DNA of 64,000 nucleotides from Convolutriloba macropyga. Lineage: Eukaryota. Positions 700 to 28,963 of this stretch are shown here, in pieces. The position numbers and the translations under genes are program-made. The notes under the pieces are model-generated. The model worked only from the letters and a program-made list of their open reading frames with translations, had not been told where the DNA came from and did not search any database. Numbering within the stretch: the first letter of the stretch is position 1; each line of letters begins with the position of its first letter. The stretch is taken from assembly GCF_964194025.1 (NCBI RefSeq), contig NW_027451610.1, forward strand, positions 1 to 64,000, read 5' to 3'.

Positions 700-2750
700 A
701 ATCAAGAAAATGTTGTTCAAATTTTGCACTTTTCAACTATTTTAGCTTATTTCTCTCAACTTCTGGCGTAGTGTCAGTAAAAACAGGCAGAAAGCAGTTT
801 TCTTTGAGTAATAAATTAAGGTTTGTATCGGTTTTACAATTAAGCAATGGTTTCTTTTCTTTTGATACCACGGATTTTCAATTTTTTTCTACTTTGTGCA
901 TTATCGATTATTTTAGAAGCTCACGGCTTCTTTGTCAAATTATCACATTATTGACAGATCCAAATGAAGGACAGAAACTTGCACAGTGTTAAAAAAAGTT
1001 GTATCAGAATGTGTTTAATGTTTCTAATGATCAGTTTTTACTTTTGGGCTGAGACACAATCCTCTACAAAAAACTTGAGTATTTTTTTTAAATTTTGCCG
1101 TATGTCTGTCTTTCTTTTTGTTGTTTTACAACCTATACCTGATAGTGATAGGCCTCACTTGTTATTCAGAACGTATGATTGAACCTATTTTTTTCGGTTA
1201 TTGCTTTTTGCTTTAATGACTTTCAAAATAATTATTTAAAAGAGATTTTTTCAACTCTTCTTTCTGCTGTAATTTTTGTCGTCATCTTACTCAGTCTCAC
1301 TATTGAGAAATCTCAACTAGTTTTGTTATATCAAACATTATTTTCTAAGCCATCTATATGTTTTAACTGACGGTTTCGACCATTTAGTTCAGCAAAAAAT
1401 TTCGAGATTTCTATACTGTTAAATTTTTGTTTCTCCTTTTGTTGTCATTCCTACGCAGTCTTTTTGCAAGGAAGACCTGTTGACGACCAAATGAGAAACA
1501 AGTGGTGATTTACAGTTCTTTCAGATTACTACGGCGCCTTGAAGACTTTAGTGTCCTAAAGTTGTTTTTGATGTTCGGGCTTCAACCTGTATTTTTCTTT
1601 TTTTTTTTTGTAGTCTGGTGACTTAGTCTCATTAATAACCAACGCAATTGGCTTCCTAAAGTGTTGCAATTAAATTGATCTTTTTTGAAATCTTGTCTTG
1701 TATGAGTAATAAAATTGTTTGTTGCATTTTGTCCTGACTTTTTATAAGTTCTTTTTGTTTCCTTTTGGAGCTATCACTTTATTGACAAGTTCAATTGACA
1801 ACAATTTCAGTGGTTATCTAGTGTCTCTTATGACTTTGGATAATTTTGTTTTAATAAAATTCGGGGAATTTTTGAACTTAACCACTGTAATATCTTATTT
1901 CGCTCAACATCTGGCTTAGTCTCAGTAACAAAAAATGTAGGAAACAATTTCCTGTGAGTGATATATTAAGGTTTTATTTTTAACCATTGGCTTCTTGGTT
2001 TTGATACTTCAAGTTTCCTTAATATTTTTTAGCATAAATGCATATTTTATAGGTTCATTTTGATTTCTTATCGAATTGCAACCTTATTGACAGGTCCAAT
2101 TGAATGAATAGATATTCGAAAACATACACAGCGTTGAGAAAAAGCATATCTGAATGTTTAAATTGTTTTTGTAGAATAGTTTATGATTTATGGCTAAGAC
2201 ACGGTTTTGTTCCGAAAATTCGTGGGCCTTTGTCCATAATTGTTTTTCTTCTTGTTGTAGTACAACGTTTACCTGACAATGATAGCTCTCTTTTTTTTAC
2301 ACTGGACATATAACTGAACCCATTTATATCTTTTTTTGGTTTATAGCTTTTTGCTCTAACGACCTTCAAATCAATTTCTGGGAAAGAGATTTTTTTCAAC
2401 TGTCTCCTTTTGTTTTTATTTTTTGTCACCATGTATCCAGTGTCACTAATAAGAAGTCTCAAAGGCTCAACAAAAATGTTTTTTGTTTGGTTTTATGTTC
2501 AATTTGATTTATATCTTTTTTGAAATCCTATGTTATGAGTTTTGAAAAAAAAGCTGTTTAAAAACATATTTGGACTTTTGGGCTGCGCCAATTTTCAATC
2601 GTTTTCCGGTCGATTTCTAGCTTAGTCTCTGTAAAGGCAGGTAACAAACCGTTTCCAGCGAGGTGTATATTAATCTTTTTAACCAATTTATTTTCAAACT
2701 TTTTTTCTCAGCTTTGTTACTGCTGTTTCTATGAGATTTCATAAATTAAT
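700..2750. repeat. Degenerate long-period repeats
   Basis: ~760-1320 is collinear with ~1910-2460, with a partial third copy at ~2617. Confidence 0.55.
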
Positions 2751-5013
2751 TGAGATTTTTATAAATTTGTATCTATTGAAGATTTTTTTTAATTTATTAA
2801 ATTAACATTAAAGGTAGGTCCTATTGGTTTTGAAATCTTGCGCAATTGAATATTTTTGATGCTCTTGGTGCAAAAATGATGGTCTTCACTGCACTTTTCT
2901 TGCAAAAGTTTATTTGAACTCTTTATATTTGTCGGTATTTCTTCTTTTTTGTAGTCTTATTACATACACTGGATAATGAGAGGTCTCGATGCTGCCTATG
3001 GAGATATAATTGAACATTTTGCGATCTGTTAATCTCTAATGATATTTTTCACTTTGAAAATAATTGTTTTCAAAAACAGAAACATATTTTTGAACTTTTT
3101 TGCTGTTTCTTGTCTACCTGGTACCCATTCGCATTGAGGACAGTTATTTGATGCGAGTTTGATTTTGTTATATTTTTTTAGACATCAAGTTTTGGTAGTC
3201 ATTATTGTTTGTTATTTGAGTTTTCTTATTGTCTTTTCTAGTAGTCCTATTAACAACAAGTTCCATTGGCCCTCTAGCGTGGCATTATTGTATTACATTT
3301 GTAGTTTATCTCTTTATCATTTGATAGCCAATTGTGTCAAACTGTGGATGAGCGGAGTCGGAACATTATGTGCGTACGCACATTACCGAGCCTTCTTGTT
3401 ATTTTTAAAATTTCACCTATACATGTTTTATTTTTCGTTGTGTCTGTTTCGCTTTAGTTTTTATCAAAATTGTAACACTAATTTTTAACTTTTTTGTTTT
3501 TTGTTACATGGAGTACATTACCGCAACATTCGTTGGTTTTCAATAGAATTTTTTACTCTAAGACAATTCCAAGAAAATGAATAAAATATTTTGTTTGTTC
3601 ATTGGCATTTCATTTGAATACTTTGCCTTTTTAGCTGTTTGCAAAGTGAACTAAATTATGGCCTTTGTTTTCCCATTAATATAACTGTATGTATATTCAC
3701 TGTAGGCCATCCGAAAATTTTCAGTGATTGGGAGGGAATGTAAATGGTAATCCATGAATTAGATTAAATTTTGTCAGCTTTTGATGTCATCTTGTCACCG
3801 CTTCTTTCAAACTGCGTCATTCACTTTAGCCATGGAAAAATGGGTCAACAATGGAAATTAATTTACACACAGTCTTATATGTATACACACACACTCACGC
3901 AAACATACACACACACAAACACAAGTTTAAAAAAAATTTGTTGGTACCTTTTATGCAATAACAATAATTCGCAAATAAAACGGTGAGATATTGTCTGCAT
4001 TTAAAGTTCTTTACACAACTTCTCTTTTTTGCCTTTTTGTCACGTATCCAAATATGTCGCTAAGTAGACAATAGTCCAATTAAAAGAGACAATCTAAAAA
4101 TAACTTTCATATCAACTATTTAATTTATAATTCGATTGATGATAAGAGATAGAAGAAATCGTTAATGACTTCTACGCTCGCTGAAACTAAACTGGAAGAA
4201 GTTATTACAAATTTTAAAAACCACTTGTGATCTCTTACCATTATATTTCATATTTCGTTATTCTTCAGTAATTACTTTGAACCATATGCGCTCATTTTTA
4301 TCCAATATTTGATAGTATTAAAAGGCGCAATCGTATTTAAAAGACAAATTGAGCACCGCCTTAATTTCAACGGAATAAAGCTAAAAAAATGTACCCCATT
4401 CATAAGAGGAACATAAATTTTGATATGAAGATGAAATTATCTGAAATAAAGGTAGCCTCCTATTTTATCTGTTGATACAGTTCTTCTCCCATTTTGTCCC
4501 TTTACTTTGAAAAAATTCACACGGATACAGTATTTCAAAAACCCTCCTTCGATACGTGAATTGCCTCTAAGAACGGGCCGTGGGCTTTTCCTTATCAGAC
4601 GAAGGATATATAGTACCTTACTCTGGGTTCTTGTTACGTTACAGGATGTGCTAATTTGGTGGAAAATTCTAATTACATTTCATTGCTACTTTTCATTGTC
4701 CTTAAAAAATTACTAGCCGTGAACGTTTTTTACGACCAATGTAGAAATTTTGGGTCTTTCCTATCTTAAACCTCCCCTATCTTGTTGGTCAGACAACCTG
4801 TACATCTCTCACCATTATATTAATCAAGCATAATGGGGGGAGGGGGGGGGGCTATAATTTCTTGGAGGAAGGGCTATGATGTGAAAAACCGAAATTGTAA
4901 AAAGTCAGTTTTGCTGAAAGTTGTCAATGTGAAGAGAAAAATTTGCATAATAATAAAAAGTTCGAATCACAATTTACTCCAAATTTCATTACATTTCATA
5001 TTATATTCTCAAA

Positions 5014-7796: not shown

Positions 7797-8390
7797 AATC
7801 TTCGGAATGTTCGGTTATAGTTAGACCAAAACGACAAAATCTATATGCTTTTTTTTTTCTTCTTCGCCATCGTCGGTCTTTTCTTTTTTTAAACACAAGG
7901 AATCTTCGGAATGTTTGGTTTCAAACGTTTGGTTTTTTACGTAAGAAATCTTCGGTACGCTCGGTCTTTTAGATTCGGTACGTTCGGATTTAAAGACTTG
8001 ATAATCTTGAGTATGTTTGGTTTCTTAGATTCGGCAATTCAATTTTCAACGTAAGATATTGTCTCCTAGAGGGTCATTTGAAACTCCTGCGATTGGGAAG
8101 TTATCATATTATTGGACTGCATCATAAAAAAATCTCAAATTCTTTATAGGAAAAACTGACGCTTTACGTTTATAAAAGGACATACCAGATTAGAGAAGCT
8201 GAACTCACAAACTCTTAGCAACGCAACATTTTAACATTTTTTTAAGTTCGAAATCAAACATACCGACTCGAAGAAACCGCAAAAGCCGACCAAACAGAAG
8301 GAGCATACGTCAGTTTCTAACTTTTGAAATCTAACATAATGAACAAACATACCAACGTTTATTTTCGCGGAAAATCGAACATACCATGCT
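7797..8390. repeat. AAACCGAACATACCGA repeat family, inverted blocks
   Basis: TTCGG-ATGTTCGGTTT units on the left, their complements on the right; same family at 20520-20990 and 63460-63700. Confidence 0.55.
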
Positions 8391-8832
8391 TTTCTTGAGT
8401 CGTTTTTTTTTCGGTCTTCTGGATTAGGTCAACAATAGCTAACAAAATTTCTAATATTTCTAAATCTCTTGTAATAATCCAGGTATTTTCTGCTTCTTTA
8501 CTTTAGTGAGAGACCTCTTGGTGGTGGTCTTGTATGAGTTGTGTACTGTATACGCACTGAGCTTGCATTTACTTAAAATATATGATTAGAGTGGGCAAAT
8601 AGAAATGAATGAGGATAAATACAACGGTCATGCGTTAATTTTTCAACTCCAACTTTGATTTTGCGACACCACGTTTTTAAGCAATATAGATTCATGCCAA
8701 CTTGCTAGGCATGCTCTTTTATTATTTTACAAAACCCGCTACTTTAAAATACAAAAACAAGTTTAAATTTTTTATAATCAAAACAATAGGCCCATGTTAG
8801 GAGGTCTATTCAGATGCAACTACTGTGAAAAT

Positions 8833-8905
8833 GGACCAGTACTGGATTCGAACCAGCATCTCTTACTTGCAAGCCTAGTGTGCTACCCAATTACACCAAC
8901 TGGTC
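8833..8905 (-). ncRNA. tRNA-like unit in the leftmost TRIM LTR (not a decoding tRNA)
   Basis: Perfect 7-bp acceptor stem GACCAGT/ACTGGTC, A box TGGTGTAATTGG, T arm GCTGG-TTCGAAT-CCAGT, followed by TTTT; anticodon stem CTAGG/GTAAG is mismatched. Confidence 0.8.
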
Positions 8906-9080
8906 TTAAGCTCTCGAACTTGGGCATCTCTTATAACCCGTTCTTACGTTCTTTCTTGTTCCTCAAGGCTTCATTTCTCTAGCCAAGTATACGTTGAACA
9001 AGTAGAGCTTCTTGTCAAGCTATGTCAAGCTTATCTTATGCACAATTTACATTAGGTTGTTCTCTTTCAACCTTCTAACA

Positions 9081-9091
9081 CTCCCCCTTAA
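9081..9091 (-). promoter_or_regulatory. TRIM polypurine tract TTAAGGGGGAG (second copy at 9464-9474)
   Basis: Directly precedes the TG of the downstream LTR on the - strand. Confidence 0.85.
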
Positions 9092-9215
9092 ATTGCGCAT
9101 CCTCTCTTTCACAGTTTCTAACTATATTGTCTCTCTTCTGCGGTTAAGCTCAGAGACTAGGGTCTGGGCCCATAACCTGTTAGGGGGTCTAATCAGGTGC
9201 AACTACTGTGAAAAT

Positions 9216-9288
9216 GGACCAGTACTGGATTCGAACCAGCATCTCTTACTTGCAAGCCTAGTGTGCTACCCAATTACACCAACTGGTC
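9216..9288 (-). ncRNA. tRNA-like unit in the middle TRIM LTR
   Basis: Identical to 8833-8905, shifted +383 bp. Confidence 0.8.
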
Positions 9289-9546
9289 TTAAGCTCTCGA
9301 ACTTGGGCATCTCTTATAACCCGTTCTTACGTTCTTTCTTGTTCCTCAAGGCTTCATTTCTCTAGCCAAGTATACGTTGAACAAGTAGAGCTTCTTGTCA
9401 AGCTATGTCAAGCTTATCTTATGCACAATTTACATTAGGTTGTTCTCTTTCAACCTTCTAACACTCCCCCTTAAATTGCGCATCCTCTCTTTCACAGTTT
9501 CTAACTATATTGTCTCTCTTCTGCGGTTAAGCTCAGAGACTAGGGT

Positions 9547-9560
9547 CTGGGCCCATAACC
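9547..9560 (-). promoter_or_regulatory. TRIM primer-binding site GGTTATGGGCCCAG (second copy at 9164-9177)
   Basis: + strand reads CTGGGCCCATAACC, the anticodon-arm sequence of animal initiator tRNA-Met; directly abuts the LTR end; same PBS type as Drosophila copia. Confidence 0.9.
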
Positions 9561-9598
9561 TGTTAGGGGGTCTAATCAGGTGCAACTACTGTGAAAAT

Positions 9599-9671
9599 GG
9601 ACCAGTACTGGATTCGAACCAGCATCTCTTACTTGCAAGCCTAGTGTGCTACCCAATTACACCAACTGGTC
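9599..9671 (-). ncRNA. tRNA-like unit in the rightmost TRIM LTR
   Basis: Identical to 8833-8905, shifted +766 bp. Confidence 0.8.
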
Positions 9672-10170
9672 TTAAGCTCTCGAACTTGGGCATCTCTTAT
9701 AACCCGTTCTTACGTTCTTTCTTGTTCCTCAAGGCTTCATTTCTCTAGCCAAGTATACGTTGAACAAGTAAAGCATTTTTTCAAGTTATGACAAGCTTAT
9801 CTTGTGTACAAATTCCGTTTGGTTTGTTCTTCTCTATTAACATTATAACACAAGCTGACATAAATTGTACCAGGTAGAAACCCGGGCTCAAAACTGACCT
9901 CTGAGTGCACCCTTTTTAGCCATGATCTTATTTGGCAAGTGCTCTAAATTTGGTTTTGGTGCGTCCAATAAACAGTTCAAAAATTTAGTCAGAACGTATT
10001 TATAGTACACTTATTTTTAGATAAAATGGGCGCACTATAATGCCAGATCAGAGATTAAATCTGACGCATAAAAATCTCATTAGTTCTTCGTTGCAATGGC
10101 TGGTAATCAAAGGTGGATCGGAACTTAGGAGAGGTCTGATCGACGACACAAAAACGCGTGCACAAAAATT

Positions 10171-11139
10171 TCCGTCCCACTAAATTCTGAAAAAAACTTT
10201 CTTTCAATTATTTACCACATACATTCAATGGAATAATAAATACATCTTGACTCATTCACTGAAATTCTTTAAATAATTCACTGCTTTTACGTAAATTCTA
10301 GAAATAATTTACAGCATCAATTCTCATCAGAGAGTAATTTTTAGTAGTTTACAGGACGTATTCACTGAAATTATAAAATTATTCCACCGCATTCACTTCA
10401 ATTCTGAATGTAACTCACCGAATTCATCAAAATTCTATGAAAGATTCACGGCATTCTCCAAAATTCTAAATCAATTCCCATCACTCACTTAGTTTCTAGA
10501 AATAATTCAGAGCATCATTTCTAAACAAAGAGTCATTTTTTAGTAAATTACCGAATGCATTCAAATAAATTATCAAAATATATCACCGCATTCACTGAAA
10601 TTCTGAAAATAATTCATCGCATTCACTGAAGTTCTATAAATAATTCACGGCATTCACCAAAACTCTAAAATAATTCACAGCATTCACTTAAATTCTAGAA
10701 AAAATTTACAGCGTCAATTCTCAACAGAGTTTTTTTTTCAATAATTTACCGCATGTATTCACTGAAATTATAAAAAAATATCACCGCATTCACTGAAATT
10801 GTGAAAGTAATTACCTTATTCACTTAGATTCTAGAAATAATTAACAGCATCAATTTTGAACAAAGAGTCATTTTTCAATAGTTACCCGCACGTATTCACT
10901 GAAATTATAAACATATTTCATCTCATTCACTGAAGTTCTAAAAAATAATTCACCACATTCAGTTAAATTCTAGAAATAATTCACAACATATATTCTGAAC
11001 AAAATGTCTTTTTTTTCAATAACTTTCCGCACGCATTCAATGAAATTATAAAAAAAATATTTCACCGCATTCACCGAAGTTTCAAAAATAATTCACAGCA
11101 CTATACGGCATCTTTCAGTTCTAATTCGCCAGGGACGGG
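10171..11139. mobile_element. Non-autonomous TIR element with CATTCACTGAAATT repeats
   Basis: Termini (T)CCGTCCC...GGGACGGG; internal degenerate short tandem units. Confidence 0.5.
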
Positions 11140-28677: not shown

Positions 28678-28963
28678 TGTTGGAAGGTTGAGAGAGAACA
28701 GCCTAATGTGAATTGTGCATAAGATATGCTTGACAAGAAGCTCTACTTGTTCAACGTATACTTGGCTGGAGAAATGAAGCAGCCTTGAGAAACAAGAAAA
28801 AACATCAGAATGGGTTCTAAGAGATGCCCTAAGTTCTAAGTTCGAGAGGTTAAGACCAGTGGGTGTATTGATTAGCCAACTAGGCCTGCAAGTAAGAGAT
28901 GGTGGTTCGAATCCAGTTGTGTTCCATTTTTAAACTAGTTGTGCCTGCTTAGATCCCTTTACA
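28678..28963 (+). mobile_element. Diverged solo LTR of the same tRNA-bearing TRIM family
   Basis: TGTTGG...TTTACA, 286 bp, collinear with the reverse complement of 9178-9463; decayed tRNA-like unit at ~28854-28925 keeps GGTTCGAATCC; no adjacent PBS or PPT. Confidence 0.85.

Follow-up and report, generated by a model that had tools for sequence, protein, structure and literature searches.

The window analyzed here, a 64,000-nucleotide stretch of DNA from Convolutriloba macropyga (contig NW_027451610.1), belongs to a metazoan genome, as indicated by the 43 nuclear-receptor zf-C4 matches that the genome contains. Between positions 8795 and 9850, on the minus strand, it carries three LTRs and two internal regions in the order LTR-internal-LTR-internal-LTR, and TRF reports 8795-9830 as a repeat with a period of 383, 2.7 copies and a 97% match. 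The original prediction had resolved this 383-bp repeat into a non-coding LTR-PBS-PPT-LTR arrangement on the minus strand, with a 73-nt tRNA-shaped unit in each LTR that ends 38 nt before the LTR end. All of these features were recovered at the predicted positions, the tRNA-like units by both ARAGORN and Rfam, but the presence of three LTRs is at odds with a single two-LTR element. The individual features are as follows:

9561..9850, minus strand: LTR 1, the 5'-most, 290 bp, 92.8% identical to LTR 2 (BLAST; alignments)
9599..9671, minus strand: tRNA-like unit of LTR 1 (ARAGORN; Rfam RF00005, 52.6 bits)
9464..9560, minus strand: internal region 1, 97 bp, too short to code (from the sequence), with the PBS GGTTATGGGCCCAG at 9547-9560, directly after the LTR, and the PPT TTAAGGGGGAG at 9464-9474
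9178..9463, minus strand: LTR 2, 286 bp, TGTTAG...CTAACA (BLAST and alignment)
9314..9318, minus strand: TATAA (LTR positions 146-150), beginning 30 nt and ending 26 nt before the tRNA-like unit of LTR 2
9216..9288, minus strand: tRNA-like unit of LTR 2 (LTR positions 176-248), with A box TGGTGTAATTGG and B box GGTTCGAATCC (ARAGORN, Rfam)
9211..9214, minus strand: T4 run one base past the tRNA-like unit of LTR 2 (LTR positions 250-253), a candidate weak Pol III terminator and R end
9081..9177, minus strand: internal region 2, identical to internal region 1, with the PBS at 9164-9177 and the PPT at 9081-9091
8795..9080, minus strand: LTR 3, 286 bp, differing from LTR 2 at three points within the final ~25 bp
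8833..8905, minus strand: tRNA-like unit of LTR 3 (ARAGORN, Rfam)
28678..28963, plus strand: an older, diverged LTR of the same superfamily, 82% identical to LTR 2 (BLAST, alignment)

The three LTRs of the window copy are not equivalent. LTR 1 shows 21 aligned differences from the other two, four of which make up one 4-bp insertion, and all of them fall within its first ~85 bp; judging from the alignment, this portion is derived from a diverged subfamily, while the remainder matches LTR 2 exactly. LTR 2 is itself a hybrid, with a 5' part like that of LTR 3 and a 3' part like that of LTR 1. The flanks of 8795-9850 (GCTTG and TGGGC) do not form a target-site duplication (TSD), and the window copy is a rearranged recombination product rather than a primary insertion. 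It also possesses a private variant, GATTAG, where the family reads GAATAG. At the older LTR (28678..28963), no adjoining internal region was found, and the tRNA-like part has decayed to the point that it was not called by ARAGORN in the whole-window run.

Elsewhere in the genome, the canonical copy is a dispersed element of 669 bp, consisting of a 97-bp internal region between two 286-bp LTRs. A search with the 383-bp unit returned 2322 first-look candidates, and over 80 matches were scored, spread across many contigs with identities of 77-100%, an abundance far beyond chance; counts for the genome came to ~650 LTR cores and ~100 internal regions. Dispersed two-LTR copies with 5-bp TSDs had been predicted, and they were found: ten of the sampled copies are single two-LTR elements, nine of them within perfect 5-bp TSDs. 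Tabulated over all 17 sampled TRIM elements or arrays, perfect duplications flank 12, and one further case matches at 4 of 5 positions; a perfect 5-bp TSD also surrounds one solo LTR of the family. Within single copies, the 5' and 3' LTRs differ at only 1-8 substitution sites per 286 (one copy has a 10-bp indel in addition), which argues for recent activity of the TRIM family. Related LTRs at 90-95% identity occur in contig data of a second organism. In contigs aligned from sequencing runs, LTR depth lies far above internal depth.

Longer TRIM arrays also occur, as exemplified by C10:56371121-56374020. In five of six arrays, the middle LTR is a hybrid with a 5' part resembling the 3' LTR and a 3' part resembling the 5' LTR. 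The intervals in which the switch takes place vary between arrays (15-151, 82-130, 119-232 and 231-281). Such switch points were considered as a marker of a fixed R region and rejected, since the intervals differ between arrays; homologous recombination fits.

The PBS of the element is perfectly complementary to nt 26-39 of the initiator tRNA-Met encoded in the host genome itself (genes in L065-L067), a match of 14 nt that becomes 15 nt in the TRIM (nt 25-39). It lies adjacent to the LTR and is complementary to an internal segment of tRNA-iMet that ends at nt 39, in the manner of copia-type, half-tRNA priming. This bears out the assignment of the PBS to the half-tRNA-iMet type, and the primer is probably the cleaved 5' half of tRNA-iMet, as in Drosophila copia.

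A Copia partner sharing the PBS and LTR termini had been postulated as well, and one was identified in the same genome. The partner pattern ACAGGTTATGGGCCCAGB occurs 528 times in the genome versus 0 for the reversed control, and the sites listed lie ~2.8 kb upstream of Copia RT matches. A representative element (L061) possesses 606-bp LTRs (TGTTAGAA...CCCAACA), the same PBS as the TRIM, a G-rich PPT and a 1420-aa frame with the Pfam domains Retrotran_gag_2, zf-CCHC, Pol_BBD, gag_pre-integrs, rve, SH3_retrovirus and RVT_2. Its gag-protease-integrase-RT order, RVT_2 domain, copia-type gag and 5-bp TSD identify this type of helper as Ty1/Copia, the TSD (CTCAA) being taken from an array (L063) in which both outer LTRs are Copia. 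The family is abundant and young, with many open frames. Its LTR body bears no relation to that of the TRIM and has no tRNA in it; what the two elements share are the LTR tips (TGTTAGAA...AACA), the PBS, a G-rich PPT and 5-bp TSDs.

TRIM and Copia sequences have also recombined with each other. The L063 array, within the CTCAA duplication, reads Copia LTR, TRIM internal region, TRIM LTR, Copia internal region, Copia LTR. A second array (L062, TSD CGCGT) has the reciprocal order of TRIM LTR, Copia internal region, Copia LTR, TRIM internal region, TRIM LTR, and a third (L064) consists of TRIM internal region, TRIM LTR, Copia internal region and Copia LTR. All between-family junctions of these three arrays fall at the LTR/PBS border; mixed TRIM/Copia junctions on the PPT side were looked for and none was found. 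In addition, a chimera of the TRIM with Copia gag (L003) is flanked by the TSD CTTCT. Joined at LTR/PBS borders within perfect TSDs, the mixed arrays tie the TRIM and Copia physically to one another. On the strength of the shared signals and the recombinants, it may be inferred that this Copia family mobilizes the TRIM in trans, and other Copia families sharing the PBS could be helpers too.

The tRNA-like unit is the most distinctive part of the LTR. ARAGORN calls all three 73-nt units of the window tRNA-Ala(TGC)-like, and Rfam RF00005 scores them at 52.6 bits (gathering score 29, E 9e-10), the acceptor stem and T arm being complete; when 8000-11000 was scanned with Rfam at E <= 1, tRNA alone was matched and no 5S. 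The D arm presumably resembles that of tRNA-Gln or tRNA-Glu more than that of tRNA-Ala. As predicted, the tRNA-like part is present in nearly all LTRs of the family, the B box being kept in 48 of 51, and both the T4 run and the TATAA are kept in 43 of 51. Copies differ from one another 3x less within the unit (0.0056) than over the remaining LTR (0.017), a contrast examined with a Fisher test that counts related copies as independent. The T4 run is the sole one on the sense strand of the 383-bp unit, i.e., one per 383 bp in the element versus 5.5 in the window background. A depletion of T runs as a Pol III signature was nonetheless dropped, as shuffles of the element's own dinucleotide make-up gave 1.47 expected for the one observed (P = 0.54). 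In three tRNA-iMet genes of the host the terminal run is T5-T6, which suggests that T4 may be a weak terminator here. With regard to caution, a TATAA at -30 suits Pol II equally, and a T4 directly after the unit could halt transcription in the 5' LTR and leave an RNA of only ~78 nt. Taken by its sequence features, the unit with its A box, B box and TATAA at -30 is most likely a promoter for Pol III.

A life cycle can be proposed from these elements. The Ty1/Copia family of the same genome would provide Gag, protease, integrase and reverse transcriptase in trans, with the TRIM imitating only the signals read by the helper's proteins, namely the LTR tips, the LTR-abutting PBS and the G-rich PPT. 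A Pol III transcript would start at the first base of the tRNA-like unit, and the T4 one base past it would act as a leaky terminator that is read through in the 5' LTR and stops transcription in the 3' LTR; the unit itself would then be the R region, with a U3 of ~175 nt and a U5 of ~33 nt. Priming would proceed from the 5' tRNA half paired to the PBS through nt 26-39, and the 5-bp target duplications would be made at integration. Mixed tandem arrays may form when, during cDNA synthesis or once it is complete, "PBS-internal-PPT-LTR" modules of TRIM and Copia become linked through the PBS that both possess, and same-family arrays of the window-copy type would arise by homologous recombination between LTRs. 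It is probable that the stretch holds a rearranged three-LTR copy of a young, non-coding metazoan TRIM with such a Copia-helped life cycle, of the kind with a tRNA-derived LTR that has been named Helenus (Kojima 2024, PMC10886601).

The best-surviving alternative, although unlikely, retains the TRIM and its Copia helper and assigns the genomic RNA to Pol II, initiating from the TATAA that lies 30 nt ahead of the unit. On this view, the tRNA-like part would either be carried along passively, as the remnant of an old insertion of a SINE or tRNA, or have some other role, for instance in packaging or as a chromatin boundary. The conserved TATAA is compatible with this, as are the ordinary, TATA-bearing LTRs of the helper Copia and the lack of significance in T-run scarcity, and the T4 immediately past the unit should impede a long Pol III transcript. 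However, a Pol II 3' end would call for an AATAAA or ATTAAA, and none occurs anywhere in the TRIM LTR or internal region; moreover, neither the A box nor the B box is damaged, and no other part of the LTR varies as little as the tRNA-like unit. Upstream TATA-like elements are used by Pol III as well, at tRNA genes of fission yeast, plants and many invertebrates. For the 5S analogue, Cassandra, transcription from its own Pol III promoter has been reported (Kojima 2024, PMC10886601).

In a second and very improbable alternative, the units are working tRNA-Ala genes spread by the retroelement, i.e., a tRNA gene amplifier instead of a promoter mimic. The ARAGORN and Rfam calls and the ~650 copies could be read this way, but two pairs of the anticodon stem are non-standard. 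Furthermore, the acceptor stem begins G1-A2-C3 and lacks G3:U70, the pair that defines alanine tRNA identity. A conclusion against working tRNA genes has likewise been reached for most Helenus elements (Kojima 2024, PMC10886601).

Finally, it is scarcely credible that there is no separate TRIM family here but simply a satellite or tandem repeat of 383 bp, or a Copia copy that has lost part of its interior: the TRF period, the longer arrays such as that on C10 and the PBS and LTR tips common to TRIM and Copia would be in keeping with it, but ten sampled copies are single two-LTR elements, nine of them within perfect 5-bp TSDs, and a deletion derivative is rejected because similarity between the LTR bodies and internal regions of the two elements is confined to the PBS and tips.

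The preferred reading, a Copia-helped Helenus-type TRIM, can be compared with several known systems. The family has the short, non-coding, two-LTR layout of Helenus with PBS and PPT, box A and box B (GGTTC) in the LTR and dispersed, TSD-flanked copies. Spot checks with three k-mers taken from the LTR and its tRNA-like unit, two of them from the window copy, gave no match in the consensus file of Kojima 2024. A tRNA-derived, LINE-dependent SINE would consist of one tRNA-related head with a LINE-like or A-rich tail and would lack LTRs, PBS and PPT; here, by contrast, the unit sits inside LTRs with TG..CA tips, accompanied by a PBS, a PPT and 5-bp TSDs. Fungal Helenus elements (Pucciniales; Helenus-1_HemVas, LTR-1_PGr) likewise have a tRNA-like unit in each LTR, close to its 3' end, together with a G-rich PPT, TGTT...AACA-type termini, 5-bp TSDs and a Copia helper with an unrelated LTR body, and they are of similar size (LTR 110-284 bp, internal region 62-354 bp). 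In two Hemileia families, even the 14 nt of the PBS are identical (ggttatgggcccag, tRNA-iMet anticodon arm). The present host, unlike theirs, is an animal, and the origin looks independent of fungal Helenus, convergent rather than related.

Animal Helenus elements share the animal host, the TRIM layout, an LTR-borne tRNA-like unit containing A and B boxes and, in some cases, tandem arrays (LTR-11_DR). Those of bivalves, fishes, chalcid wasps, Lingula and nemerteans have TSDs of 4 bp wherever measured, and those analyzed use tRNA 3'-end primers with Gypsy-like primer sites (Kojima 2024, PMC10886601). The 4-bp TSD, tRNA 3'-end PBS and Gypsy-like PBS region of these Gypsy-dependent elements were not found in the present family, which differs in its 5-bp TSDs, its probable use of the 5' half of tRNA-iMet and its pairing with Copia.

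Drosophila copia, yeast Ty5 and other half-tRNA Ty1/Copia elements resemble the TRIM in their LTR-abutting PBS, internal tRNA-iMet pairing to nt 39 and 5-bp TSDs, and their gag-PR-IN-RT order matches that of the helper. Drosophila copia and Ty5 are autonomous, however, whereas here a non-coding element of 669 bp copies their signals and adds a tRNA-like LTR unit. Cassandra of plants and Ajax of nemerteans also carry a small-RNA-gene promoter in a TRIM LTR ("TRIMp3") and frequently form tandem arrays with shared LTRs, but their module is derived from 5S rRNA rather than tRNA; no helper is known for Cassandra (Kojima 2024, PMC10886601), in contrast to the one identified for the present TRIM. As for the mixed arrays, two different elements also share one LTR in the Tf1/Tf2 tandems, which arise when PBS sequences anneal without the help of integrase (Li et al. 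2022, PMC11042837), and in the "complex" elements that template switching has produced in Triticeae (Sabot and Schulman 2007, PMC1950507). There, too, the junction falls at a PBS that both partners have in identical form, and natural hybrid tandems occur. What sets the present arrays apart is that a TRIM is combined with its own helper, the LTRs of the two being unrelated; the joining depends on ~14-17 nt in common, and intact 5-bp TSDs flank the arrays.

The original prediction also ventured that the combination of a tRNA in the LTR with half-tRNA priming might be undescribed. This did not hold up, as most fungal Helenus elements have a tRNA-like LTR and anticodon-loop tRNA-iMet priming together (Kojima 2024, PMC10886601), including the two Hemileia families above. 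The design is already known; what is new is a metazoan host with Copia-type rules and a helper that can be named. Copia-style rules have so far been reported for Helenus only from fungi and one plant (Kojima 2024, PMC10886601). The most far-reaching version of the proposal, a first Copia-dependent, half-tRNA-iMet-primed metazoan Helenus of independent origin that forms a model pair with its helper, is tentative, being quite possible but short of probable; in its fullest form, Pol III would serve the whole cycle and a deliberately weak T4 would set R.

If true, it would break the published split of "animals = Gypsy and 4 bp, fungi = Copia and 5 bp" and provide a workable model pair, in which a young TRIM stands beside a helper family that retains open reading frames and beside mixed arrays whose only joining point is the PBS common to both. 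How the dependence of TRIMs on their helpers is maintained has been stated to be unknown (Kojima 2024, PMC10886601), and a TRIM and a Copia element sharing only LTR tips, PBS and G-rich PPT would define the minimal cis signals in a testable pair. On a practical note, the ~650 tRNA-like units are expected to be miscalled as tRNA-Ala genes when this genome is annotated. Moreover, that the tRNA-in-LTR and half-tRNA design arose in rust fungi and also in an animal points to convergence upon a common solution.

The original prediction described an LTR-PBS-PPT-LTR element, and its features proved accurate, although the copy at 8795-9850 has three LTRs and two internal regions. It reads as a tandem repeat with a period of 383 bp (2.7 copies, 97%; TRF) and resolves as follows.

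Architecture of the window copy, read from the sequence
9850-9561, - strand, first LTR (LTR1)
9560-9464, - strand, first internal region
9463-9178, - strand, second LTR (LTR2)
9177-9081, - strand, second internal region
9080-8795, - strand, third LTR (LTR3)

The TRIM LTR (TGTTAG...CTAACA) is 286 bp in length, and the 97-bp internal region opens with GGTTATGGGCCCAG, abutting one LTR, and closes with TTAAGGGGGAG, abutting the next. As predicted, each LTR of this copy holds a 73-nt tRNA-shaped unit (LTR positions 176-248) that ends 38 nt short of the LTR end. ARAGORN's call is tRNA-Ala(TGC), and against the Rfam tRNA model the unit scores 52.6 bits (gathering score 29), with standard pairing throughout the Rfam alignment save for two anticodon-stem pairs. 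It probably does not function as a tRNA-Ala, since the acceptor stem lacks G3:U70 and the anticodon stem is imperfect. The D arm (TGGTGTAATTGGGTAGCAC; window 9216-9288) looks nearer that of tRNA-Gln or tRNA-Glu than that of tRNA-Ala, and a minor anticodon-loop change may account for the "Ala" call. AT-rich nested tandem repeats (periods of 31, 61, 136, and 199 bp; 76-81% match) adjoin the array at window 10271-11000.

The copy in the window did not arise as a primary insertion. It is flanked by GCTTG and TGGGC, which form no target-site duplication. LTR1 and LTR2 disagree at 21 aligned positions, 4 of them a single 4-bp insertion, and all lie in the first ~85 bp of LTR1, beyond which the two are identical. 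LTR3 departs from LTR2 by three changes, all in its last ~25 bp, and the two internal regions are identical to each other. Given the positions of these differences, LTR2 is a hybrid of an LTR3-type 5' part and an LTR1-type 3' part. This is the pattern expected of homologous recombination, and it fits either unequal crossing-over between the LTRs of a single element or recombination of an older LTR with a young copy. A middle-LTR hybrid of like polarity occurs in four further three-LTR arrays (L006, L014, L015, and L028); because the switch intervals vary among arrays, they mark crossovers and not a fixed R boundary.

Across the 1.18-Gb assembly, the 383-bp unit gave 2322 first-look candidates and more than 80 scored matches (77-100% identity) spread over many contigs. 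Seventeen elements or arrays among the fetched loci comprised ten single 669-bp LTR-internal-LTR elements, six three-LTR arrays (including the window copy), and one five-LTR array. Perfect 5-bp target-site duplications (e.g., TTGTC, CCTCA, GGAAC, TTAAT, and CGGTC) flank 12 of the 17, bearing out the expectation of dispersed two-LTR copies with duplications of this length, and one further member has a duplication with 4/5 bases matching. A solo TRIM LTR is flanked by a TTTTG duplication. Within a single element, the 5' LTR differs from the 3' LTR at 1-8 substitution sites of 286 (plus a 10-bp indel in one copy), so transposition has been recent. Genome-wide counts of conserved 22-mers (<=2 mismatches) gave 648 LTR cores versus 98 PBS-internal junctions; most TRIM LTRs therefore have no adjoining TRIM internal region and are probably solo. 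The LTR excess also appears in the contig depth of a DNA run.

Several unusual arrangements were encountered along the way. At G000:C10:56371121-56374020, a longer satellite-like TRIM array with two unit lengths carries at least 9 PBS-internal junctions in series, at spacings of about 358-370 bp and 522 bp. At L022 (G000:C6:67941116-67944496), positions 928-3025, a five-LTR array stands head-to-head with an inverted family LTR, one base between them; LTR 3' ends form both outer borders, with CTTAA on each side, as if cDNA with an inverted LTR had integrated in one piece. In a second organism (runs X1-X3), contigs are 90-95% identical to the 5' part of the LTR and the head of the tRNA-like unit, with a related B box (GGATCGAACC, + strand), which makes the family, or a sister of it, older than the host species.

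The host genome is that of an animal. Spread over its large scaffolds are 43 matches to PF00105, the nuclear-receptor zinc finger, a domain not known outside Metazoa, and the control genomes gave none. The iMet anticodon-arm pattern CTGGGCCCATAACCCAG has 238 exact occurrences in the genome, seemingly many for an initiator tRNA, and in each of the three loci fetched ARAGORN identified tRNA-Met(CAT) genes. We take these to be initiator-like, given an A1:U72 pair (L065), three anticodon-stem G:C pairs, and a T loop of GATCGAAAC or GATCAAAAC. The predicted match of the PBS to the initiator tRNA-Met anticodon arm is exact, as it complements nt 26-39 of these host tRNAs (nt 25-39 for the TRIM). At G000:C7:7429527-7441476, initiator tRNA-Met genes are clustered in tandem at ~705 bp spacing, the first two units lying in L065. 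The TRIM PBS thereby appears to be of the copia and Ty5 type, in which priming is from a 3'-truncated tRNA (as cited by Kojima 2024, PMC10886601).

Copia elements with the TRIM's PBS and LTR tips, also anticipated, do exist. RVT_2 (Copia RT) gave 2649 first-look candidates, many within open frames of ~1300-1470 aa, and the LTR-end plus PBS pattern ACAGGTTATGGGCCCAGB occurs 528 times versus 0 for a reversed control; among the sites listed, these lie on the same strand as RVT_2 matches and ~2.8 kb upstream. One such element, L061, has 606-bp LTRs (TGTTAGAA...CCCAACA; 2 differences over the 536 bp of the pair compared), the TRIM's PBS with no spacer after the LTR, a G-rich PPT (GAGTGGGGG), and a 1420-aa frame in Copia order: copia-type gag, CCHC knuckle, protease barrel, integrase, SH3, and RVT_2. 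Neither its LTR body nor its internal region resembles the TRIM, and a scan of its LTR found no tRNA-like unit. The only features common to the two are an 8-nt 5' tip, an AACA 3' tip, the PBS, a G-rich PPT, and the 5-bp duplication length. Older TRIM variants at G000:C1:35228840 and G000:C2395:14614 have the PPT AAGTGGGAG, which falls between AAGGGGGAG of the young TRIM and GAGTGGGGG of the Copia; this hints that the TRIM PPT may formerly have tracked its helper's more closely.

The strongest available evidence for this Copia family as the helper comes from four loci where the two families are fused.

Fused TRIM/Copia elements
L063: Copia LTR, TRIM internal, TRIM LTR, complete Copia internal, Copia LTR; duplication CTCAA
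L062: TRIM LTR, complete Copia internal, Copia LTR, TRIM internal, TRIM LTR; duplication CGCGT
L064: TRIM internal, TRIM LTR, Copia internal, Copia LTR; 5' end truncated
L003, 5' part: TRIM LTR, PBS, 1087 bp of Copia leader and gag, last 32 bp of a TRIM LTR
L003, continuing after the 32-bp remnant: TRIM internal, TRIM LTR, TRIM internal, TRIM LTR; duplication CTTCT for the whole of L003

In L063, L062, and L064, each family switch falls exactly at the LTR-end/PBS border, and a search for both possible kinds of PPT-side mixed junction found none; the building block is therefore "PBS-internal-PPT-LTR", joined through the common PBS. Two routes would fit, namely template switching, or strand transfer from one co-packaged RNA to another, ahead of integration (Sabot and Schulman 2007, PMC1950507), and integrase-independent annealing of a cDNA's single-stranded PBS end to that of an element already in the genome, much as PBS annealing without integrase makes fission yeast Tf1-Tf2 tandems with one common LTR (Li et al. 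2022, PMC11042837). Both require TRIM cDNA to meet Copia DNA or cDNA through the common PBS. Overall, the reading of this TRIM as paired with this Copia is very probable. LTR-LTR crossing-over is ruled out as a source of the mixed arrays, because the LTRs of the two families are unrelated. At L013 (G000:C6:13549388-13552770), ~2165-2180, GGGGAG, the last 6 nt of the TRIM PPT, precedes a TRIM 5' LTR that meets the 5' end of a helper-family Copia LTR head-to-head; the Tf1 integrase-independent pathway uses PPT remnants at the cDNA end.

How the TRIM is transcribed is a less certain matter. The A box of the tRNA-like unit (TGGTGTAATTGG) is a fitting one and the B box (GGTTCGAATCC) a perfect one. 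The B box is kept in 48/51 distinct LTR copies, and the tRNA-like part is thus present in nearly all family LTRs, as the original prediction required. The unit is the least variable LTR part across these copies (minor-allele fraction of 0.0056, against 0.017 upstream and 0.015 downstream, in a test that counts related copies as independent). Among the post-insertion differences between LTRs of one element, 6 of about 34 fall in the unit, with no clear depletion, which is consistent with constraint on source copies alone. The sole T4 run on the TRIM sense strand lies one base past the unit (kept in 43/51 copies), and T4 is possibly a poor terminator in this host, where three of the tRNA-iMet genes have T5 or T6 at their ends. 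Neither AATAAA nor ATTAAA occurs in the whole element. In a Pol III model, transcription would start at the tRNA-like unit of the 5' LTR, pass its weak T4 and the 97 bp of internal region, and end at the T4 in the 3' LTR, making the unit R. Promoter boxes, constancy of the unit, T4, and missing AATAAA/ATTAAA together fit the TRIMp3 idea. Against it, TATAA at -30 would suit Pol II as well, and a scarcity of T runs, a would-be sign of Pol III, is not significant against the TRIM's own composition. On balance, we lean slightly toward Pol III transcription.

By definition, the family is a Helenus, being a TRIM with tRNA-derived LTR sequence; TRIMp3 was proposed for TRIMs with a Pol III promoter (Kojima 2024, PMC10886601). 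The suggested novelty of combining a tRNA in the LTR with half-tRNA priming does not hold, as most fungal Helenus already do so: they are primed mostly by the tRNA anticodon loop, with tRNA-iMet dominant, all families have 5-bp duplications, their PBS regions are Copia-like, and two families of Hemileia vastatrix have a 14-nt PBS identical to this one (PMC10886601). In contrast, every animal Helenus with a measured duplication has 4 bp, and the animal families analyzed use 3'-end primers and resemble only Gypsy in the PBS (PMC10886601), as opposed to the 5 bp, half-tRNA-iMet, and Copia of this TRIM. A Mnemiopsis Helenus family matches this one in the length of its internal region (97 bp) but is unrelated to it in sequence and PBS. 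No later paper on animal Helenus or TRIMp3 turned up in literature text searches. Both real and well defined, the finding is of a "fungal" design of Helenus in an animal host. What is new is a Copia-dependent, half-tRNA-primed Helenus in a metazoan, an identified helper for it, and mixed TRIM/Copia arrays joined only at the PBS.
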